A DNA stretch of 64,000 nucleotides, from sequence record NC_016571.1; one strand, given 5' to 3'. The notes below the pieces were generated by a model that was given only the letters and a program-made list of their open reading frames with translations, made no database searches and had not been told where the DNA came from. Of the stretch, positions 4,124 through 16,901 are shown piece after piece. Each line of letters starts with the position of its first letter. Position 1 is the first letter of the stretch. A program made the position numbers and the translations under genes.

Positions 4124-6934
4124 ATGTCGACTGCATACATGCTTGAGCACACCCAAGAAAAAGCCCCACTTGTTGATTACGCAATTAAAAACATGTGGGG
4201 TAACCCTGAACTTGATTCACAGTTCCAGATTAAACTGGCGCGTGTATCTGGGCCCCAAGGTTTTGTAAACGACTTCGCATACTTAGGTAAGCAGAGATAC
4301 CTGCCTAAGACTTTAACCTTTTTTCATGTCTTCACTTTAGGTGGACTTGATGCTGGTTTCTGGAATTTCGGTAGTCGTGGCAAAAGCTGGTACCCGATGG
4401 ATCAGTGGGTTCGTGCTTCTAACATTGCCACAGATCGTGGCGTTGTAATTGATGTATATAAAGGTGATGGTTCGATGTTCCCTCGTGGTGAGACATATAT
4501 CATGCCTTGCTTCGATGGTGTCACATTAGTCTGTGTTCCTATTAACCCGAACTTCCCGTTACCATTGGATAAGAACCTTTATATCCACTGTTACAGTTCG
4601 GACATTAATACGAAGAACCTGTCTCCAGAAAACAAACGTAAATATACGGTTGCTTATTCTGGCGGTATCTATATCCAACATGAGGATATGGAAAGAGTTA
4701 AGTTAAACTATGACTCTTGGAAAGCCTATGACATGGGAATGGTTGCTTTCTTCCATAACGGTAAGATCGTACCTATCGACTCCATAAGCCTACAGCCGGG
4801 TGATTTGATTGAGGCGTTTTACGACCCTTCCATCGAAATGATCCTGAAGTACAAATACAAATCGATGCCGGACTATTTGTCTGATCTCGATAAGAAAAGA
4901 AAAATCATTCTTTTCCCTGGTTTTGATGATTTACCGAAGATGTATCGTTATTATGACGATTGCCACTTCTATATTACTAACCGTCGGAACAATCATTCTT
5001 ATTACTATCACCGTAATACGGAAGACTCAGTTAGACAGTTAACTCATCAAGACTATGGCATGACTGCCGACTACATTGAGTTCTTGGCTAATCGTCTTAT
5101 TAAGGATGACACAACCAAGAAAACCACAATGGATGATATTGATATCACTGTGGCTTACCATGCGACTCGTTGGCAGTTTAAATTGGGACCAACCTCTTCT
5201 CGCATTAACGATCTGTATTTGTTAGAAGATCATAGCAAGATACTTCAGGCGATGACAGGTTCTAATTCCAATATCACGGAATGGACTGCGATTGAATTAG
5301 AGAAGTCTCCAACTAACAAAGTTCTGAATGCCATCTGTCCTAAGCTGACCACTGAGATGGTTCGTGATGGGTTGGGTTATAATGGGTGTTCTGTTGCGAT
5401 GTCTAACAACGCACACTACATGCCTTGGAAAACTCCAGGGGATCCTGACCATGACCCTATCTATCCAACACCTCCTTATACCTCAGGGCTAGGGTACACC
5501 GTCCCTCCGACGTTTGTAGAGAGTTCTACTGCATACGAGTATGATGCTGATGGATTACTCCTGAGACTGGTTGGAATTACCAACCAAGAGTATTACGCCC
5601 CGGGTGAAGGTTGTACTTATGTGGAATACGCTTTAGGGCGAGCAACCACTTGGCTGGACTACATCATCACCAAGCGTGATGTCAAACTGAAACCTAACTA
5701 TGGCTTCAGAGTCTATAAAGCTAAATGGGCTATCGATCCTAATTGGGAACCTCTCTTCCAGGAAATCCCTGTTAGTACTGATGGTGTTATCCCAAGCCTT
5801 CCTAACGGCGAGGAGATCAGAGCGCTGATGCGTGATGAAATCCCTGAGCAAGTTGATCCTGAATTACCAGAAGGTGGACGCCCAGTCCCTCCATGGATTG
5901 ATATCACTGATGAAGTAGATCAGTGGCACATCGATGGTGACTACCTGGTATGGGATATTGACATGATCAACTGGGTTGGTTTAATTGTGTTTGACTCTGC
6001 TCATTTGTATAATGAGTTTGATCTCTCTCACATCGATAACTCTTTGACCTTTGCCATTACACACCAATGGCCAATCGGTGGTGTACTGCTTCCGATGGAA
6101 CCAGGTCAGATTGATATCTGGATGAACCGACATCCTCTAATTGAGAACGTTGACTATATCTTAGATTTCCCCAATGTCTACATCATCAACAAGATGTGGT
6201 TGGTAGAAGGGAAACAGCATATCCAGTATCGTGGTGTAGGGCTCTCCCGTAATGGGTTGGTTAATACCAGTGAGCTTGGTTTTGTTGCAGATGGTGTTAT
6301 CGGCTATAATGGTCGTTATAACCTCCGCATCGACAGACCAACTAAAACGATTATCAAAGGTCGTCTGTTCTTAACACCGACTGTTGACTGGGCTGAAGAT
6401 ATTCATCATGGTAATAACCTGGTTGGGTTAAATGGTTGGCCTTACGAGGTTAAGCATTATTACTCAGCTAACAAGTATGTAGACAAATGGAATACGTACT
6501 GGGGTTATGATGATGCACGGGCTCTCGATAAGAAGATCTCTGATTACTTAACCATTCATGCAACCTACAAGTCTAATGCTCCTCACAATCCGGTTTATCT
6601 GGATAAAGATAAGTACAGACTTTATAGTCCGTTCCTGAGTCTCATCGTGAACGAGCTATTACTTGGATTCATGACGGCTCCAGTTCCTTCTGGAACAGAG
6701 GTTCCGTATCCTCCAAGACTGGTTGATGAAATCACTCGCCCTTATCAATGGTTGTTGAAATACGATCCGATCATTCTTGGTCTGGACTTGGGATACTTCA
6801 CAGTACACCCTTACAACAACTGGGATAAAGTCACATTAACACCCGACCAACTTACTTTCGTTAAAACCGTCAATGATTTGTTCCTAGATGGGAAACTTAA
6901 GATTGAAGGTCACTTTGAGGTGAAACATGTTTGA
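4124..6934 (+). CDS. virion structural/baseplate protein (phiKZ gp27-like by synteny)
   Basis: 936 aa ORF in the conserved sheath-terminase interval. Confidence 0.55.
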   Translation: MSTAYMLEHTQEKAPLVDYAIKNMWGNPELDSQFQIKLARVSGPQGFVNDFAYLGKQRYLPKTLTFFHVFTLGGLDAGFWNFGSRGKSWYPMDQWVRASNIATDRGVVIDVYKGDGSMFPRGETYIMPCFDGVTLVCVPINPNFPLPLDKNLYIHCYSSDINTKNLSPENKRKYTVAYSGGIYIQHEDMERVKLNYDSWKAYDMGMVAFFHNGKIVPIDSISLQPGDLIEAFYDPSIEMILKYKYKSMPDYLSDLDKKRKIILFPGFDDLPKMYRYYDDCHFYITNRRNNHSYYYHRNTEDSVRQLTHQDYGMTADYIEFLANRLIKDDTTKKTTMDDIDITVAYHATRWQFKLGPTSSRINDLYLLEDHSKILQAMTGSNSNITEWTAIELEKSPTNKVLNAICPKLTTEMVRDGLGYNGCSVAMSNNAHYMPWKTPGDPDHDPIYPTPPYTSGLGYTVPPTFVESSTAYEYDADGLLLRLVGITNQEYYAPGEGCTYVEYALGRATTWLDYIITKRDVKLKPNYGFRVYKAKWAIDPNWEPLFQEIPVSTDGVIPSLPNGEEIRALMRDEIPEQVDPELPEGGRPVPPWIDITDEVDQWHIDGDYLVWDIDMINWVGLIVFDSAHLYNEFDLSHIDNSLTFAITHQWPIGGVLLPMEPGQIDIWMNRHPLIENVDYILDFPNVYIINKMWLVEGKQHIQYRGVGLSRNGLVNTSELGFVADGVIGYNGRYNLRIDRPTKTIIKGRLFLTPTVDWAEDIHHGNNLVGLNGWPYEVKHYYSANKYVDKWNTYWGYDDARALDKKISDYLTIHATYKSNAPHNPVYLDKDKYRLYSPFLSLIVNELLLGFMTAPVPSGTEVPYPPRLVDEITRPYQWLLKYDPIILGLDLGYFTVHPYNNWDKVTLTPDQLTFVKTVNDLFLDGKLKIEGHFEVKHV

Positions 6935-8722: not shown

Positions 8723-11134
8723 TTATATCATGAATGGCGAACGACGATTCATACCAAAACGAGAACCTTTAGAACGTTTCTCAATTGCTCGTTTATTACG
8801 CTCTTGTTTGGCATTATCAATGATCTCATCGATAGTGATAGTTTTACGCATCTCTTTAGGAATCAATTCCGAAAGTTTACGTATCTCCATTTCAATACGG
8901 GTAGCGAGTGTATTATTATCGGAGGTCATCAATTCCTTCGTCAGATCGTTTATACGCCCACGTATCTTGATGAACATATCCAACTGTGCTTTGTTATACT
9001 TAGGAGCGTCACCGGTGTCCTTAAGCGTCGTAATCTCAGTTAACGTCATTCCCTGAGGAACGTCGTAGAGATGTTTATTGTATCCGAGCTTAATGAACCA
9101 GAAAGTCAGTAACCAAGCAATAACCAAGTCATCGTGTCCGCCTGACTTGTGGTCTATACGCCCATCCTTATCAATCTCCAAACCAATCAGTTCGTCAATC
9201 AATAACTTATATCGAATACCGGCACCAGTAAGCGAGATAGCTTCATGAATAAAGCCATACATCTGTCTACGTGATTCAGGTCCAGTGTGGAATCCAAACT
9301 TACCTTTATAGCGGAGGTAGAATTCCTTACTGCGATACTTAGCGTTCATCTCCATGACTTCTTTGAATTCCCGTTCATAACGAATAGGTTTATCATAGAT
9401 GTCATTAAAGATACGCTTGAATGGATCAATCCCATAAGCTGGCAACATGATCAACAAACGCTCGATCATGTGGGCTGCCCTGTTACGCTCAATGATGAGT
9501 AAGCTATTCGGTATGCGGAGTATCAATTCCTTAAGAACTTCCGTCACGTCATCCATAAAGGCTAGAGGATAACGGCCTGTTGCTATATTCTCACCTGTCC
9601 TCATTCGCCTGAGCACTAATGTCACGGCATCTCGGTTGTTCGCATCCGAGGTATCCATGCCCATCAGTATATATTCATCAGGGTGACCGATTAGAGACTC
9701 AGCCATTTCCTTGCTAATGAACCAGTCAACAAAAAGACCAGTTTCATTAATCTCTTCGCTGTGATCAAACTCCTTCTTACTATCAGCCAGTTTCTCACGG
9801 GTGAAGTCATCGAAGAGTTTGTTCATCCCCTCTTCAGTCCACATCATCAGTAAGTCAATCTTAGCCTTAGACCAAGACAGACCAAGTTTATCCATTGTCT
9901 CCTTAACCCAGGCATGACCGAAGCCGAGTTGGAGGTGGGTAAACATCATACCGATCTTTGGAGATGTGGTAGAGACAGGGGCTGCTTTAATACAACGTTG
10001 TACAAGGTGAGTTTCAGAGAAGCTATCAAAGAACGCTTCACGCCACTCAGTAGATGACATGAAGTCATCATGCATGTACTTACCTTCATCCTTGAGGATG
10101 GAGTTAGGTGTTGTAGCTTTAGCGGTAAAGTAAGGGATGCCTTTCTCACGCGCTTCTTTCTGAGCCGTCAGTGTAGCAGGGCCAGAACCGTTTATAATAC
10201 CTTCAATGTATTTAGTCCATGCTGGTTCGTCATAGAGCAATACTTCAAAGGTAGAACCACGAGATACGTTCTCTGCGCCATCTTCACCACCAGAAGGTAC
10301 ACGTACTTCAAAGGTGTTCTTCTTATCGGGACCATAAGCCTCATAAGTAAGAATGTTACCAGCATCCTTATCTTTATAAGTCATGTTGGTGAGATAAGCT
10401 GGCATAGCCGAGCGCATCTTCTTAACTGCTTCAACGAACTGCATTCGGTTCGATGCTGCAAGTGTAATCAGACCGGAACGGAAACCACGACCCATCAGGT
10501 ATTGCATTACTGTAACGAGTACCTGCATCCCAACTGTCTTACCAGACTGACGAGGCATCAGGATAGTTGTGTTGAGGTGATTCAGGCATGACCAGATGAA
10601 AGAGATTACAGCACGGTTAGCTCGGAAGCGTGAGGAACCGTTGACCTTAATAACTTCACGGATAACGTACCAGATGTTTTCATTACATTCGTTCAAGATC
10701 ATTGAACGTTGTACATCTGTTAAGTTCTCATCCCAAGGATCAAGATCTTTAATCAGCGGGTTGTTAATCTGTAATAAGAAGTAATAGTTCTTAATACCCA
10801 TCTGACGGAAAAGTTCAGCAGTACGCAAGAATGTCTTATTACTTGTCTCTAGATGGACACCGGCACGGTAGCGTTGGAAGTCCTTTAAGAAACGAACTGT
10901 TTTCAAAGTCCAGAGGGTATCTTCTTCATAGTGAGACTGAATTCGGACATCATCGTCTTCTAACTGATGTCTTTTGTTCTTGTCATCCATGAGGTACTCT
11001 GGAAGCTGTGAAGGTTTAAGTCCTAGGTGTGATAGGACCTTCTTAGCAATGTCCAATTGACTCATAGGTAAATCTACCTTGTAATGTTGGTGAACGCTAC
11101 ATAGGGCTTTACAGGAAGCCTGATAGCTTAACAA
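8723..11134 (-). CDS. terL: terminase large subunit (real start probably ATG at 11065)
   Basis: Walker A-like MPRQSGKT, Walker B-like VLLYDE, nuclease acidic motifs GMDTSD and HDDLVIAW; phiKZ gp25 position. Confidence 0.9.
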   Translation of the reverse strand: MLSYQASCKALCSVHQHYKVDLPMSQLDIAKKVLSHLGLKPSQLPEYLMDDKNKRHQLEDDDVRIQSHYEEDTLWTLKTVRFLKDFQRYRAGVHLETSNKTFLRTAELFRQMGIKNYYFLLQINNPLIKDLDPWDENLTDVQRSMILNECNENIWYVIREVIKVNGSSRFRANRAVISFIWSCLNHLNTTILMPRQSGKTVGMQVLVTVMQYLMGRGFRSGLITLAASNRMQFVEAVKKMRSAMPAYLTNMTYKDKDAGNILTYEAYGPDKKNTFEVRVPSGGEDGAENVSRGSTFEVLLYDEPAWTKYIEGIINGSGPATLTAQKEAREKGIPYFTAKATTPNSILKDEGKYMHDDFMSSTEWREAFFDSFSETHLVQRCIKAAPVSTTSPKIGMMFTHLQLGFGHAWVKETMDKLGLSWSKAKIDLLMMWTEEGMNKLFDDFTREKLADSKKEFDHSEEINETGLFVDWFISKEMAESLIGHPDEYILMGMDTSDANNRDAVTLVLRRMRTGENIATGRYPLAFMDDVTEVLKELILRIPNSLLIIERNRAAHMIERLLIMLPAYGIDPFKRIFNDIYDKPIRYEREFKEVMEMNAKYRSKEFYLRYKGKFGFHTGPESRRQMYGFIHEAISLTGAGIRYKLLIDELIGLEIDKDGRIDHKSGGHDDLVIAWLLTFWFIKLGYNKHLYDVPQGMTLTEITTLKDTGDAPKYNKAQLDMFIKIRGRINDLTKELMTSDNNTLATRIEMEIRKLSELIPKEMRKTITIDEIIDNAKQERNKRAIEKRSKGSRFGMNRRSPFMI

Positions 11135-11169
11135 AGGATGGGTTGTTTTAGCTGGAACATATTTCAGAT

Positions 11170-11190
11170 AGATATTACTAAAGTGTGTAA
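11170..11190 (+). promoter_or_regulatory. putative early (virion RNAP) promoter
   Basis: AGATATTAC...TGTA matches a motif recurring upstream of early operons. Confidence 0.5.
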
Positions 11191-11220
11191 CATAAACCTA
11201 TTCAATTAAAGGATACCATC

Positions 11221-11508
11221 ATGTCTACTTTCGAAACTAATGTAAACACCAATGACACTACCGTGGAGTGGGTGGTTGAGAGTAAAGGCGATTACCTTAA
11301 AGGTGATTGTGAAATCTCTGCTGTAATCAAGGGAACTCATGGGCATACGTCATGGGGGTGGCCAGATGATGAGAGTAAGATCATTGTGCTTAGTTGTAAC
11401 AATCAAAGATCCAAACCATTACCCATCGACCCTCGCATTATCGCTGCTGCCGAATCAGTGGCATTGGAAATTGTTAACGAAAAGAATGCTGAACAAAAAG
11501 TCAATTAA
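11221..11508 (+). CDS. hypothetical protein
   Basis: 95 aa ORF with AAGGA RBS, own promoter motif and terminator. Confidence 0.7.
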   Translation: MSTFETNVNTNDTTVEWVVESKGDYLKGDCEISAVIKGTHGHTSWGWPDDESKIIVLSCNNQRSKPLPIDPRIIAAAESVALEIVNEKNAEQKVN

Positions 11509-11550
11509 CCAATGAGATAATAAGTGTCTATTTAAAATAAAATAACAAAG

Positions 11551-11583
11551 ACCCCTACCCCTCCTTTCGGAGTGGGTAGGGTT
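11551..11583. terminator. bidirectional intrinsic terminator
   Basis: CCCTACCCCTCC-TTTC-GGAGTGGGTAGGG between convergent genes. Confidence 0.7.
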
Positions 11584-11600
11584 ATCTTTAATTTATTTTT

Positions 11601-12215
11601 TTATTCTGGATCGTTCTCACCGAGTAACTCGAGGATCTCGTCTACCGAGGTATGTTCATTGATGTAATGAATTTTGGTTTTACCCTTTAACTCGACGATA
11701 GCTAAAGAACGTAGATACTTCTCACGAAGGTTATCCCAGTTCTCTTTCTTCTTAAGGAAGAGATCTTTCTCATCCACTGCTCGGTTACAGTTAGCCAGAC
11801 GTTCTAAGAAAGTAGAATGATCAATGTCCAAGAAGAAGATATGGTCAGGATAGATATCGTGGCCTGCTGTTCTCAGCATCTCTTCATTGGCACGCAATAC
11901 TGCACTTGGCGGCATGGTAGGAGTTGATTGATAAACCATCGAACTCACAACACATCGATCGGAGATTAATCCCCCTTCACGATATTTACATACTACCTCA
12001 TCAAAGCAGTCAATACGTCCTGCAATGATCATCATCATTTCATAGTGCTTAGGGAGATAGTTCGCATTGTTCATGCGTTTCACTTCCGCAGCATGTTCAT
12101 TACCAGTATAAGGTTCGTTAACTGTAGCCCAACCAAGGCGAGCAATTAACTTTTTAGTCAACTCAGACTTACCTGCAAAATCCAAACCTTCTAGGGCTAC
12201 ATATTTACCAAACAT
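11601..12215 (-). CDS. tmk: thymidylate kinase
   Basis: P-loop EGLDFAGKS, VNEP, ISDRCVVSSMVYQ and PDHIFFLD motifs. Confidence 0.9.
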   Translation of the reverse strand: MFGKYVALEGLDFAGKSELTKKLIARLGWATVNEPYTGNEHAAEVKRMNNANYLPKHYEMMMIIAGRIDCFDEVVCKYREGGLISDRCVVSSMVYQSTPTMPPSAVLRANEEMLRTAGHDIYPDHIFFLDIDHSTFLERLANCNRAVDEKDLFLKKKENWDNLREKYLRSLAIVELKGKTKIHYINEHTSVDEILELLGENDPE

Positions 12216-13697
12216 TTATACCTTTGACTCCATGATTAATGTACGAAGAACAATATAAAGCATCAGACTGGTACGGAGCGAAGTGATCTTAATCTCGGTC
12301 TTAATACCTGTCATTGCTTTAACAATCTCATCGCCTTCAGCTCTCAGTTTGAGAAGTAACGCGTTTGAGGATTTGCTCGACGTATAAGCACCACGTATTT
12401 TAAAGAACACGTGTTTAACATCCTGGTGCTTGATTCCATTTGCACTTATATATTCAAACAAGTGCGTAGTTACGTCATCAACAAACTCACGATACTTATC
12501 GCCCTTAGCATGTGCATACTGGGCTGGGAAATCCTTAAGGATTGATTCCAACTTATCTGCATCAGTTCGGGGGATTGCTTTGGCTGCATAAGTTGCAAGT
12601 TCCTGTTTAAAGAAACTGTTCTTATCGTTCAGAACGTTTGCAATATAGTTCTTAAACCGGTTAGCAGATTTCTGAACATCCTTGATATTCAGTTCACCAT
12701 CCAGTAAAGCCAAGCCTGAGTCTGTCTCAACGAGATCAACGGAATCTTTAATCTCATAAAGCACTTTGGTGTAATCGTTAATAACACCTTTAAGACGGGA
12801 CTCCATATCGTTCACCATGTAAACGATTTTCTTGTCATTATCCATCTTAGCAAAGGCATCAAAGTGAATACCCGTACGAGGGTCGATAATAAACTCACCA
12901 CGAGCACGGAATAGATCATTCCATGAACCATAGCGCTTGATATCAAACTTCAAGGAGAGCTTGTTATAGGCCGTTATAGCGACGTTCTGTTTTACCAGAT
13001 AGCCGAAGTAGTGGTTCATGATAGACGTCATGACACGGTAGTGGAATAACATGACCAGATTGATCAATGCTTCGTTCTTCATATTGCTAGGAAGATTGGA
13101 ATTCCACACACGGTTCATTAGGTAGATAATAGACAGGTTGAAAGCTTCAGAAGAAACTTTAAAGTCTTTATTGATCCACTTGGTCTTGATCAGTTCATCA
13201 CGGAGTCTTACTTCATCCACGTCGATAATGTCGCGGAAGAAAGTAACACGGTCAGATGTTTTAAAGAGTACACGATGAGTCCCCAGATAAGGAGAGCCAA
13301 AGAACTCAGTATGATCATTGTCTTTAGTTGCGAAACCATAGACATAACGACGAAGAGTCTGTACCCAGCGAGGAGTAATCTCTAAATCTTCAACCAGGTT
13401 ATCAAAGATATCCTTAACTGCGTTGTCGCGGTTATAGTTGAAGTTGGCCGGTAGAGCTTCTAGCCCAGACCAGTATTCGGGGATATTCGCAGCGGATTCA
13501 AATCCACTAACCCAGCCTGGAGGAATTGCAGGAGCAAAGAAGTCAGTTAAAGGCTTACCCTCTAAACCAGCTAATAGCTCACGCATCTCAACGTCGGACA
13601 TGGCACGTTCGTATTTCTCTTCATCCGTTAACTCAAGGAATCGATACTTTACTAATCCGCCCATGTGACTTTTAAAACGATCAGTAGCAGCAGACAT
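12216..13697 (-). CDS. conserved jumbo phage protein, possibly virion
   Basis: 493 aa ORF translationally coupled to its neighbours. Confidence 0.6.
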   Translation of the reverse strand: MSAATDRFKSHMGGLVKYRFLELTDEEKYERAMSDVEMRELLAGLEGKPLTDFFAPAIPPGWVSGFESAANIPEYWSGLEALPANFNYNRDNAVKDIFDNLVEDLEITPRWVQTLRRYVYGFATKDNDHTEFFGSPYLGTHRVLFKTSDRVTFFRDIIDVDEVRLRDELIKTKWINKDFKVSSEAFNLSIIYLMNRVWNSNLPSNMKNEALINLVMLFHYRVMTSIMNHYFGYLVKQNVAITAYNKLSLKFDIKRYGSWNDLFRARGEFIIDPRTGIHFDAFAKMDNDKKIVYMVNDMESRLKGVINDYTKVLYEIKDSVDLVETDSGLALLDGELNIKDVQKSANRFKNYIANVLNDKNSFFKQELATYAAKAIPRTDADKLESILKDFPAQYAHAKGDKYREFVDDVTTHLFEYISANGIKHQDVKHVFFKIRGAYTSSKSSNALLLKLRAEGDEIVKAMTGIKTEIKITSLRTSLMLYIVLRTLIMESKV

Positions 13698-14545
13698 TAT
13701 CTTTTCCTCGGAACAGAGTACTTGATTTGGTCAGACTTGCCTTTAGGATCAGCGTACTGGAGACGTTTCTTAATTTCGTTCTCATAGAAGTCTTTAAACT
13801 CTCTGTGAGCATCAGCATAACCTTGGATATCATCCTGAAGGTCATCGACGGTTACACCGAAACGAGAAACGGCTTCTTGCATCCCACGGCGACAGTTCTT
13901 ATAGATATAAGTTTTGACACCAAGCTCTACAAGCTCAGCAAACTTATCATACATCTTCGGTGGAATTACAGAGAAGTGGTCGTCATAGGACAATACCACT
14001 TTGGCAATCATGTTAAAGAGAGCAGAGCCAGCATCACGAATGAGGAAGGAGTTATTCCCCGTCATGGTGAATGTAGTAAAGGTACGTTGAACGTTACCAT
14101 CATCAAGACCGTTGATCAGACGACCTAATGCGTTGTTCATTTGACCTACACCGCAGGTTGCATAGTTGCTGAAGTTATTACCGTTAGCAATAGCTCTGTT
14201 AATGTTTCCAGGGTACACTTCGATAACCTGGAGAATACGTCTACCACCTGTTAAGAAATCAGGTACGTTGACGTGGATAATCCCACCTTGGAGATTCTCA
14301 ATGTTTGCACTACTAAGATCAATGATCTCTGTAGTACCACCTGCTACGTTCAGCAGAGGAGCAACCATCTTCAGAATAACCTTCTCTCTTATACCTTGTT
14401 CAATAGAGAACTCAGTATTGACAGGTCCCCAAATACCACCATAACCGTTGTTCGGATTATCGAAGGCTAACTTGAGTAAATAGTCAGAGATATCGGTAGG
14501 ACCATTAATGACGTATTCAATAGAAAAGTCTACTGGGTTTGACAT
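13697..14545 (-). CDS. conserved jumbo phage protein, possibly virion
   Basis: 282 aa ORF with AAGGA RBS. Confidence 0.6.
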   Translation of the reverse strand: MSNPVDFSIEYVINGPTDISDYLLKLAFDNPNNGYGGIWGPVNTEFSIEQGIREKVILKMVAPLLNVAGGTTEIIDLSSANIENLQGGIIHVNVPDFLTGGRRILQVIEVYPGNINRAIANGNNFSNYATCGVGQMNNALGRLINGLDDGNVQRTFTTFTMTGNNSFLIRDAGSALFNMIAKVVLSYDDHFSVIPPKMYDKFAELVELGVKTYIYKNCRRGMQEAVSRFGVTVDDLQDDIQGYADAHREFKDFYENEIKKRLQYADPKGKSDQIKYSVPRKR

Positions 14546-14592
14546 AATTAGTCCTTCATTTTTGTAAGCTTACAAAATATCCAAAGACAATC

Positions 14593-14627
14593 AAAAACCC
14601 CTACCCCACCCAAAGGCGAGATAGGGG
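14593..14627 (-). terminator. intrinsic terminator closing the non-coding region
   Basis: minus strand CCCCTATCTCGCC-TTT-GGGTGGGGTAGGGG followed by TTTTT. Confidence 0.7.
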
Positions 14628-14861
14628 CAGAGGTAGTGTCATTGCATACACCCTAGGGCAGACTCGATGGACTATATAGGAGCTACCCATAAATCCGACC
14701 AAATCTACCAAAGGCTGTCTACATTGATGTCAACAACTTCTCCCAGGCATGGGAGCAGACCGTTTGTAGCCTGCATCGTATAATGCCTTATACTGTCAGG
14801 TATGCTACGCTGTTTAGTCCCGTTAGTCTTTCGGGGAGTCGCTCACGGTTAAGGCGCGACT

Positions 14862-14952
14862 AGACATGACGGCTTCACTAATGCTGGAGACATTATCGTG
14901 AAGACCCGTTTCGTCTGCAATTTATATCCCCGTCAGACTCGTCAGATGTTCC
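14862..14952 (-). ncRNA. type I hammerhead ribozyme
   Basis: minus strand ACAU-CUGACGA-GUCUG...CAGAC-GAAA-CGG...CCG-UC^AUGU: full catalytic core, three helices and a GUC cleavage triplet. Confidence 0.85.
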
Positions 14953-15584
14953 GGGCGTTCTCTCCCACCAGAGAGTAGGTCGAGTGAAACGATGTCGCGA
15001 GGTCAACTGTAAGTTGCCGATTAATCCATCAAGTCTTTGACAAGGGATATTAAATTCGCTTTCGTTCGAATCACTCTGTTTGTTAGGGAAGCTAACCAAA
15101 GTTACTTTAACTACGGTCTGTGGATAACCTAGGGTTAAAAGATAAGTTTGACGGCTAGCTCCCTAATGGATTGCACCATCCTGTTCACTACGCTTCGAGT
15201 ACTCGGGTATGAGATATTATTACTCAGCTTGAGATCGACAGGTGATGCAAAGGAAGAAGGTCCCGATTAGATCGTTACCTAAAAAGGGTGCGCGGGCTTG
15301 TCAGTAGGCGGCGCATACGCCACCAGTACCGGACCCGCAGCTATAGTCGCCATGCTGGCGACACCCACCAGGAACTACTACTGCGACAGGACTATGGCCT
15401 GAGTTCATTCCTGGATTTACGACCGGGAGGGTAAACCCCCGGTATTTGCCTTCCCATCGGCCACACCAGCCACGGAAGGTCTTACAATCCCAGCATGTCA
15501 ACTGGCACACCCCTCTTAACCCACATCGCTATCCGCAGGGAGTTAAGCAAGACATACACTTCTCGACATACAATCGGGATATTG

Positions 15585-15995
15585 TCATTTCACCAGATCG
15601 TACTTAGTATCCATCTCGGCACGTTTGCTATTGCTTACGTATTCCTCAAAGGTACATTTATACCAGTCACCCTCACCGATTTCCCGGCTATAGAAGATAA
15701 CTGCTGGGTCGTAAGCTTTCTTAGAAGGCTTATCCACAGGACGGTGAAACACTTGTAATGTATGACCCAATTCTGATATCAGATAGGCTTCATGATCATT
15801 ACAGATAAACGTTGGCTGTACACCATGTCCGTGTTCCACCACAATAATGGTGTTCTTCGGCATGTCGGCATACTTACCACCGTACTCACCCATATTAGTC
15901 AAACGGTTAATCACCGAGTTATGAGTAATATGGAAGAATTTTTCCCGGTTGGCTATTTCGCCAGTTGGGTTGCTTGAAACAAGCTTCAATAACAT
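15585..15995 (-). CDS. hypothetical protein
   Basis: 136 aa ORF with GAGG RBS downstream of the tRNAs. Confidence 0.65.
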   Translation of the reverse strand: MLLKLVSSNPTGEIANREKFFHITHNSVINRLTNMGEYGGKYADMPKNTIIVVEHGHGVQPTFICNDHEAYLISELGHTLQVFHRPVDKPSKKAYDPAVIFYSREIGEGDWYKCTFEEYVSNSKRAEMDTKYDLVK

Positions 15996-16039
15996 AGTAA
16001 CCTCAATTGCTTCTTATTGTTGGAGATTAAATGAAATTA

Positions 16040-16116
16040 TGGTGGCCCCGGCGTGACTTGAACACGCGACCAAGCGATTATGAGTCACCTGCTCTAACCG
16101 TCTGAGCTACGGGGCC
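16040..16116 (-). tRNA. tRNA-Ile2 (CAU)
   Basis: cloverleaf GGCCCCG...CUCAUAA...GGGGCCACCA; close to the E. coli ileX type rather than tRNA-Met. Confidence 0.85.
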
Positions 16117-16120
16117 GGAA

Positions 16121-16196
16121 TGGCGCGCCCTACAGGATTCGAACCTGTGACCAATAGCTTAGAAGGCTACTGCTCTATCCACTGAGCTAAGAGCGC
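16121..16196 (-). tRNA. tRNA-Arg (UCU)
   Basis: GCGCUCU acceptor, GUAGC-CUUCUAA-GCUAU anticodon arm, GGUUCGAAUCC, encoded CCA; argU-like. Confidence 0.95.
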
Positions 16197-16204
16197 CGAA
16201 TTAC

Positions 16205-16471
16205 TTATTCTGCTACCTTAGCCAGATTTGCTTTATGGGAAGCCACTACAGGAACTAAACCCTGGAACCCATGCTTGTTGTACTGACCGTCAACGAAGAT
16301 CTGAGGAACAGTTTGAACTTTCTCTCCACACATCTCGCTGAGTTTAGCACCATCAATACCAGCTTCCACGATATTGACATATTCGTGAGTGATGCCTTCA
16401 ACACCTTCAACCAGTGCTTTAGCGCGATCACACCATGGACAATTAGGCTTACCATAAATTACAACATTCAT
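16205..16471 (-). CDS. glutaredoxin
   Basis: YGKPNCPWCDRAK and TVPQIFVDG motifs. Confidence 0.9.
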   Translation of the reverse strand: MNVVIYGKPNCPWCDRAKALVEGVEGITHEYVNIVEAGIDGAKLSEMCGEKVQTVPQIFVDGQYNKHGFQGLVPVVASHKANLAKVAE

Positions 16472-16701
16472 TTTGGGATTCCGTTTAAAGGAGAATGATA
16501 GAACATACCTCTGGATGGCATATTCAATATACCTGCTGGTTTCGTTGCAAACACGTTGTAGGGTTTACTTTCGCGGATACCTACCTCTAACGTTAATCTG
16601 GCAATCAGTGGATTAAAGAAACTAAAACCAGTAACTGTTAAATGTGGTTGCTCAGAAACATATTTAAAATCATTGGGAACAAAACCTTCTGGCACTTCCA
16701 T
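16468..16701 (-). CDS. hypothetical protein
   Basis: 77 aa ORF with AAGGA RBS, overlapping the glutaredoxin start. Confidence 0.6.
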   Translation of the reverse strand: MEVPEGFVPNDFKYVSEQPHLTVTGFSFFNPLIARLTLEVGIRESKPYNVFATKPAGILNMPSRGMFYHSPLNGIPK

Positions 16702-16732
16702 AATGATTCCTTAGAAGCAGTGGTCATAAATA

Positions 16733-16821
16733 TGGCAGAGAGTATGGGATTCGAACCCATGAGCCCCGAAGGACTGCCTCCTTAGCAGGGAGGTGACTTA
16801 AACCAACTCATCCAACTCTCT
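16733..16821 (-). tRNA. tRNA-Ser (GCU)
   Basis: AGAGAGU acceptor, CCUCC-CUGCUAA-GGAGG, long variable arm, encoded CCA. Confidence 0.95.
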
Positions 16822-16825
16822 AATG

Positions 16826-16901
16826 TGGCGCTCGTGACAGGGCTCGAACCTGTGACATACGGATTAACAGTCCGCCGTTCTACCGACTGAACTACACGAG
16901 C
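16826..16901 (-). tRNA. tRNA-Asn (GUU)
   Basis: GCUCGUG acceptor, GCGGA-CUGUUAA-UCCGU, encoded CCA. Confidence 0.95.

Follow-up and report, generated by a model that had tools for sequence, protein, structure and literature searches.

The minus strand of Pseudomonas phage OBP (JN627160, 284,757 bp) carries a complete type I hammerhead motif which, judging from its sequence and from covariation among its relatives, we take to be a genuine, conserved self-cleaving ribozyme. With a probability of roughly 0.7, the cleavage predicted for this hammerhead makes the 3′ end of a structured RNA of ~705 nt and separates two RNA modules from each other. The analysis was centered on a window of 64,000 nt (the whole stretch of DNA that was analysed), whose coordinates are those of the record. 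The ribozyme is located in a gap of 1.04 kb without annotated genes, between OBP_011 (15585-15995) and OBP_010 (13697-14545), on the minus strand; OBP_010 is a virion-protein gene (DUF7484). The locus comprises the following features, given in the direction of the minus strand:

16043-16901, minus strand: tRNA gene cluster (Asn, Ser, Arg, Met), interleaved with a glutaredoxin gene, upstream of the large RNA
14868-15571, minus strand: large 5′ structured RNA, ~705 nt in OBP, ending in the hammerhead; it is conserved in 14 genomes or contigs, and 15571 is an approximate 5′ boundary, set where conservation begins
14629-14867, minus strand: 3′ module, a structured RNA with covarying helices, predicted to have a 5′-OH end on release
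14592-14628, minus strand: intrinsic terminator, CCCCUA...UAGGGG, followed by a U tract, with a 14-bp stem at 14628-14597

The consensus hammerhead core consists of C3 U4 G5 A6 N7 G8 A9, G12 A13 A14 and N16.2 U16.1 H17. Direct reading of the minus strand from 14955 to 14864 gave a complete type I hammerhead, in which the consensus core is present in full (CUGACGA, GAAA, A15.1-U16.1, G10.1-C11.1 and GUC^A). The type I topology, with an open helix I and with helices II and III capped by loops, is apparent both from this reading and from the descriptor match described below. Its parts are as follows:

14952-14955, minus strand: 5′ strand of the pseudoknot, CCCG, which pairs with CGGG of loop II
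between CCCG and ACAU, minus strand: linker GA, from sequence reading
14946-14949, minus strand: 5′ strand of helix I, ACAU, from sequence reading and family covariation
14939-14945, minus strand: catalytic core strand C3-A9, CUGACGA; CUGAnGA is invariant in 14/14
14913-14938, minus strand: helix II hairpin with a 16-nt loop, GUCUG (14938-14934) pairing with CAGAC (14917-14913); G10.1-C11.1 is invariant and the distal pairs covary
loop II, minus strand: A-CGGG-GAUAUAAAUUG, that is, the 3′ strand of the pseudoknot, CGGG (14932-14929), plus an A-rich stretch
14909-14912, minus strand: GAAA, the core nucleotides G12 A13 A14 plus A15.1, invariant in 14/14
14869-14909, minus strand: helix III, from A15.1 to U16.1, in three segments of 4 + 6 + 5 bp in OBP (A15.1-U16.1 plus CGG/CCG; CUUCAC/GUGAAG; UAAUG/CAUUA); read in order, CGG-GU-CUUCAC-GA-UAAUG-UCUCCAG-CAUUA-GUGAAG-CCG, where GU is a bulge
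14884-14890, minus strand: terminal loop of helix III, UCUCCAG, conserved
within helix III, minus strand: GGG(U) bulge region, invariant among members
14867-14868, minus strand: predicted cleavage site, C17 (14868) ^ A1.1 (14867); GUC^N is invariant
14864-14867, minus strand: 3′ strand of helix I, AUGU, the predicted 5′ end of the 3′ product

A preliminary description of this sequence had proposed a complete type I hammerhead on the minus strand, and every element that it listed was found at its place. The cut that it predicted between 14868 and 14867 coincides with GUC^A in OBP and with the GUC^N that is invariant across the family. As for the extent of the element, the placement was retained, while its 5′ limit, previously set at 14952, lies at 14955 when the pseudoknot strand is included, and helix I comprises just 4 bp.

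Both strands of the 64 kb window were searched with a type I descriptor that required an exact core and at least 4 bp in each of helices I, II and III. Exactly one match, the site at 14868, was obtained, compared with a mean of 0.003 matches per window in 300 dinucleotide-preserving shuffles (0.077 with 3-bp helices). At gathering thresholds, Rfam reported only four tRNAs in the window and did not report the hammerhead site. In E-value mode, Hammerhead_1 (RF00163) gave a partial and misaligned match of 16.6 bits (E = 1.5) against a gathering score of 34, and standard Rfam annotation would therefore miss the ribozyme. The low score is attributable to the 41-nt helix III in three segments, the 16-nt loop II and the helix I of 3-4 bp; the RF00163 model is built on a helix III of 4 bp and a short loop II. 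We read the missed cut-off as a limit of the model and not as an argument against membership in the hammerhead class. The minimum free energy of the isolated 105 nt was no more stable than that of shuffled sequences (z = -0.46), and the minimum free energy fold of this OBP segment favours pairing of CAGAC with the post-cleavage GUCUAG. For HDV-family ribozymes, whose fold is a nested double pseudoknot and which cut at their own 5′ edge, no Rfam match was obtained in OBP or five relatives, the hammerhead core being present instead.

The ribozyme was detected in 14 genomes or contigs of jumbo phages (253-285 kb), OBP included, always at the syntenic position and with 13 distinct ribozyme sequences among them. 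These represent phages of eight host genera (Pseudomonas, Kosakonia, Klebsiella, Serratia, Erwinia, Edwardsiella, Pantoea and Shewanella) as well as metagenome contigs. With the OBP gap as blastn query, the syntenic gap was recovered from Kosakonia phage Kc263, Klebsiella phage N1M2 and two Serratia phages, Sureiya and Yubaba. Among the 77 loci that matched a loose hammerhead pattern in IMG/VR viral contigs, five, besides OBP, were homologous across the whole RNA according to nhmmer and belong to contigs of 260-277 kb. One further distinct contig came from a metagenome scan, and blastn searches from two contigs added Erwinia phage AH04, Edwardsiella phage pEt-SU, Pantoea phage Survivor and Shewanella phage SXP01.

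A family covariance model, built from ten of the 14 members, gave 63-106 bits for all 14 and at most 32 bits for unrelated hammerheads. Bacterial contigs (one genome per species) yielded seven pattern matches, none of which belonged to the OBP ribozyme family; the three that were scored with the family model reached 30-32 bits at most. Within the window, a family-model match at 6665-6777 (15 bits, E = 0.11) has no CUGAnGA core and was rejected as a chance match. Neither a hammerhead nor a homologue of the 5′ domain was found in six more distant relatives that have the downstream DUF7484 virion gene in common, namely Aeromonas phages pAEv1810, D6, ZPAH34 and PS1, Pseudomonas phage EL and Klebsiella phage phiKp_32.

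Lack of conservation of the core in related phages had been named beforehand as an observation that would speak against the ribozyme; the comparison gave a core that is invariant in 14/14. Specifically, 11 core positions, together with A15.1-U16.1, G10.1-C11.1 and C17, are the same in every member, and the sole variable core position is N7 (C, U or A), which the consensus leaves free. All three helices covary across the family. Helix I occurs as ACAU/AUGU, CUAU/AUAG, CAU/AUG, CACC/GGUG, CAG/CUG and CC/GG, that is, with 2-4 contiguous pairs, and the identity of N1.1 (A, G or C) varies in step with that of N2.1 (U, C or G). The distal pairs of helix II occur as UG/CA, CA/UG, UA/UA and CC/GG, and helix III shows changes on both sides in 10 of its 14 pairs, with the two outer segments varying at nearly every pair; the helix III pairs were also inspected manually in the sequences. 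When tested for a helix I longer than 3-4 bp by eye in all members, the sequences gave no conserved register; extra pairs are possible only in Kc263 (UCG/CGA) and pEt-SU (GCAU/AUGC).

In a MAFFT alignment, which is not structure-fitted, 84.5% of the cells were paired and 16 of 28 pairs were compensatory, a level reached by 0-1 of 500 shuffles; sliding the partners against each other reduced pairing to 28-49%. The corresponding values in the model-fitted alignment of the 14 members were 91.4%, 19 of 28 and, for the slid controls, 28-46%. Because the model-fitted alignment leans toward nested helices, the MAFFT figures are taken as the conservative ones.

The preliminary description had overlooked a pseudoknot of 4-5 bp that joins loop II to the nucleotides flanking helix I on its 5′ side. 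This pairing reads CCCG/CGGG in OBP, CAUCG/CGAUG in seven members, CGUCG/CGACG in Kc263 and contig L014, UGUCG/CGACA in N1M2, Sureiya and Yubaba, and GUUCG/CGAAC in SXP01. Its spacing is fixed, at 2 nt upstream of helix I and 1 nt past the 5′ strand of helix II. Overall, 98-98.5% of the cells were paired and three of the five pairs were changed on both sides. The pseudoknot is absent from the covariance model and was found independently by RNAalifold in a 902-column alignment. A brace of this kind is needed for fast cleavage at physiological Mg2+ and is not class-defining. Given the pseudoknot and its fixed spacers, a helix I of 3-4 bp could be active. In our judgement, the pseudoknot provides the strongest comparative argument for a putative working ribozyme as opposed to a look-alike.

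The low Rfam score and the short helix I could also be explained by a structural motif of the large RNA that resembles a hammerhead and does not cleave, having arisen by chance or from a ribozyme that is no longer active. This explanation is very unlikely, as the catalytic positions are invariant, with N7 alone varying, although the mean column identity of the 5′-domain alignment is 56%. Moreover, the bracing pseudoknot covaries, and the chance expectation is the 0.003 per window given above.

The hammerhead forms the last ~90 nt of the large RNA, whose length upstream of the cleavage site ranges from 619 to 776 nt across members. The context proposed in the preliminary description, a large structured non-coding RNA of a jumbo phage, was borne out, as the region is conserved and covarying and lacks a coding pattern; gaps in non-multiples of three occur throughout, from which the region was judged to be non-coding. 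Invariant islands in the 5′ domain include UGUAAGACC, GAACGAAAG, GAUAUC and UGGUGGG. On the large RNA, RNAalifold predicted 62 pairs, 36 of them with compensatory changes, and a second run on a different alignment yielded 27 helices, the majority of them showing 2-5 pair types; for the 5′ domain, the structural alignment is approximate. The large RNA fits no Rfam 15 family. Neither it nor the 3′ module matched any family at E<=10 (OBP 14550-16050) or E<=5 (five relatives), and the matches to mir-2970, NrrF, HepC_CRE and alpha_tmRNA were rejected, being far under their thresholds and not common to different genomes. No paper on the large RNA was found in the literature searched. In two IMG/VR contigs, L064 and L038, ~180 nt of the mid 5′ domain (alignment columns ~250-440) are missing, with unrelated sequence instead, and L038 also has ~65 nt inserted into one hairpin of the 3′ module, which indicates that some portions of both RNAs can vary or be dispensed with.

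The tRNA cluster probably belongs to the same transcription unit as the large RNA. The distance from tRNA-Met to the start of the large RNA is 10-25 nt in N1M2, Sureiya, Yubaba and contig L093, and in several relatives the 5′ end of the large RNA would probably be set by processing of this adjacent tRNA. In OBP only, OBP_011, a 136-aa ORF without a Pfam match, is located between tRNA-Met and the large RNA, and it may be an insertion. A search for a sigma-70-like promoter on the minus strand here found none, and the transcription unit is therefore assumed from gene orientation and the terminator; OBP-like jumbo phages may use their own RNA polymerases. The terminator motif is conserved after the RNA in all relatives. 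Its hairpin, CCCCUAC...GUAGGGGUUU, recurs within the window at ~11549-11560 (minus strand), where the copy terminates an operon of virion genes and thymidylate kinase, and outside the window at OBP 109659-109700. A palindrome, UUUUGUAAGCUUACAAAAA, common to OBP and Kc263, is located in the 50 nt from the terminator to the start of OBP_010 (window 14548-14596, minus strand); UUUUGUAAGCUUACAAAAA may be a promoter or operator of the virion genes.

Based on this architecture, we propose the following course of events. Transcription of OBP minus strand 15571-14592 would produce the structured RNA of ~705 nt, with the hammerhead as its last ~90 nt, followed by a module of ~275 nt that ends in the terminator. 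The hammerhead would fold after transcription of helix III and the short helix I strand, the pseudoknot would hold helices I and II parallel and offset the short helix I, and the ribozyme would cut after C17 (14868). The predicted 5′ product has a precise 3′ end with a 2′,3′-cyclic phosphate and retains the entire ribozyme body (helices II and III). The predicted 3′ product starts with a 5′-OH and would correspond to the 3′ module in OBP and to a bare terminator hairpin in pEt-SU, Survivor and SXP01. Two such products, a long 5′ RNA and a 3′ RNA of ~275 nt, had been expected from the preliminary description, and the intrinsic terminator at 14628-14597 with its T run agrees with this expectation. 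The architecture suggests that the hammerhead serves as a built-in 3′-end maturation element and as punctuation between two separable RNA modules.

In ten genomes with a readable flank, a 3′ module of ~275 nt (240-350 nt) is followed by the terminator; in contig L093, the same module begins and the contig stops after 122 nt. The 3′ module is absent from pEt-SU, Survivor and SXP01, in which only the homologous terminator is present, 15-25 nt past the cleavage site. Wherever the flank is readable, the ribozyme stands between the large RNA and the terminator. Aeromonas phages PS1 and pAEv1810, whose downstream virion gene has ~73% protein identity with that of OBP, carry a 3′-module candidate at the same position and with the same terminator type, without the hammerhead and without the 5′ domain (PS1 L116 2130-2433 and pAEv1810 L113 ~1082-1300, just upstream of the DUF7484 virion gene). 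The nhmmer match of this candidate to OBP is weak (E = 2e-5, 15.9 bits); it is syntenic, and the motifs GCCCUAAC-GUGAG and CAAAC-GU...GAAGU-GU are common to both, so homology with the OBP 3′ module is probable. In pAEv1810, an HNH endonuclease gene on the opposite strand was observed between the module and the virion gene.

Since three members have no module and the Aeromonas modules have no ribozyme, the ribozyme goes with the large 5′ RNA, and its position shows that the large RNA and the downstream module are separate units. The same module is nevertheless conserved, structured and apparently an independent unit in PS1 and pAEv1810, and the cut might chiefly make the 5′ end of this ~275-nt RNA, with the large RNA as a leader or folding platform. 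RNA decay can depend on the 5′ end, and a 5′-OH end could alter the stability of the module. We consider this order of priorities unlikely, because pEt-SU, Survivor and SXP01 (3/14) keep the ribozyme and the large RNA without the module, and the Aeromonas modules occur without the ribozyme, which co-occurs with the 5′ RNA instead. Formation of the 3′ end of the large RNA is thus the reading that we prefer for the cut.

Helix III has two non-catalytic parts, the loop (C/U)UCCA(G/A) and the invariant GGG(U) bulge, which could be docking or alternative-pairing sites. The loop (window 14884-14890) resembles AAAUCCAAGAG, which forms one strand of a helix inside the large RNA, and an inactive alternative pairing is predicted in OBP. 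Such features would be compatible with a regulated switch, in which folding of the large RNA, a ligand or a protein controls cleavage and thereby tunes read-through into OBP_010-008 or the stability of these transcripts. A switch seems decidedly unlikely, however, as the RNA and the virion genes are kept apart by a strong, conserved terminator and no specific alternative structure has covariation support. The co-variation of G/A in the loop with C/U in CUUGG tracks two subclades and amounts to approximately one evolutionary event. Hence, the idea that the helix III loop, CUCCAG/A, pairs over a long range with the conserved CUUGGUGGG was rejected; moreover, CUUGG is already paired locally with UCCAAG. 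A further RNAalifold pairing, of columns 157-161 with CGGGU of helix III, is probably an artefact, a local hairpin being predicted in another run. In addition, the first loop of the 3′ module, CCUUAACC (window 14846-14853), resembles GCUUAAC near the 5′ end of the large RNA, and in OBP CCUUAACC is complementary to GGUUAAG near that end. Both loop resemblances could reflect tertiary contacts or alternative pairings.

Hammerheads of type I typically occur in repeat-associated elements (PMC3088659), and an RNA of ~1 kb with such a hammerhead could be what remains of a mobile, viroid-like or retrozyme-like element, or its cargo, with the ribozyme serving rolling-circle processing or circularisation. 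An origin of this kind is highly improbable here, given that each locus has a single hammerhead and no repeats, at a fixed syntenic location in all genomes. In the 14 members, comparison of the first 60 nt of the RNA with the 25 nt past the cleavage site gave no consistent same-sense or complementary excess over shuffles, and no reverse transcriptase gene was annotated in the loci read.

The OBP element, interpreted as a 3′-end-forming ribozyme, can be compared with several known systems. Hammerheads are common in phage genomes (Perreault et al. 2011, PMC3088659), in line with the 77 loci of the IMG/VR scan; it is the host RNA and the position of the ribozyme inside it that are unusual. The literature searched contained no paper in which jumbo phages, Chimalliviridae or phage OBP were connected with a hammerhead or any other self-cleaving ribozyme. 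Approximately 40% of hammerheads, of all three types, have a pseudoknot between stems I and II (PMC3088659), and mutation and rescue indicated that fast cleavage at 0.5 mM Mg2+ depends on these pseudoknots (Perreault et al. 2011, PMC3088659). With pseudoknotted type I hammerheads (PMC3088659; Rfam clan CL00010, RF00163), the OBP element has in common an identical core, the GUC triplet, A15.1-U16.1, G10.1-C11.1, a Watson-Crick loop-to-flank pseudoknot with spacers of 2 nt and 1 nt, and a phage intergenic site; it differs from them in its score below the gathering score, its 41-nt helix III, its 16-nt loop II and its helix I of 3-4 bp. Unlike stand-alone hammerheads or those flanking protein genes, it is the 3′ terminal domain of a structured RNA of ~700 nt. 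The hammerhead class has thousands of members, to which the ribozyme may add one phage subfamily, and the host RNA may be a new class.

Theta (minimal HDV-like) ribozymes adjoin phage tRNAs and trim the end of the neighbouring RNA in cis (Kienbeck et al. 2024, PMC10879173). Being likewise small cis ribozymes in a phage RNA-gene cluster, they appear to be the closest functional analogue of the OBP hammerhead. The two differ in fold (hammerhead versus HDV double pseudoknot) and in the RNA to which they are attached (a large RNA versus a tRNA); furthermore, a hammerhead remains on the 5′ product, whereas an HDV-like ribozyme remains on the 3′ product.

In its scale, the OBP RNA is comparable to GOLLD and ROOL, which have been studied by cryo-EM (bioRxiv 10.1101/2024.12.08.627333), in that it is phage-encoded, 0.6-1 kb in length, highly structured and near tRNA genes. 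Unlike these, the OBP-type RNA was found in jumbo phages of Gammaproteobacteria and has its own predicted self-cleaving ribozyme, and it matched neither family's Rfam model at E<=10 (OBP) or E<=5 (five relatives). GOLLD and ROOL adjoin tRNA genes, and we know of no self-cleaving ribozyme module in either. We see about even odds that the ~700-nt RNA represents a new ornate RNA class of OBP-like Gammaproteobacteria jumbo phages, on the scale of GOLLD and ROOL and the first known with its own self-cleaving maturation module, in which a tRNA would set the 5′ end, the hammerhead would set a 3′ end with a cyclic phosphate and the same cut would free a second module. The ribozyme marks the exact predicted 3′ end of a large, covarying, Rfam-unmatched RNA in at least 14 jumbo phages or contigs. 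For work on the function of large structured phage RNAs such as GOLLD and ROOL, the OBP RNA is a candidate of the same scale. Because several of the host-phage pairs are in laboratory culture and the predicted processing site is cleanly mutable, both the need for the RNA and its processed form are genetically testable.

In prophages of Agrobacterium and Clostridium scindens, multiple hammerheads cut polycistronic transcripts (PMC3088659). The OBP hammerhead would similarly act as punctuation within a longer transcript; those of the prophages occur in twos or threes flanking protein genes, whereas that of OBP is single and lies between two non-coding modules. A GC-rich IMG/VR contig, L023 (3300045136_000538), contains four hammerhead-like matches to the family model (23-26 bits) within 3.4 kb (8866-12209). 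These fall outside the OBP family, with no relation to it, and are similar to the arrays of several hammerheads described for prophages.
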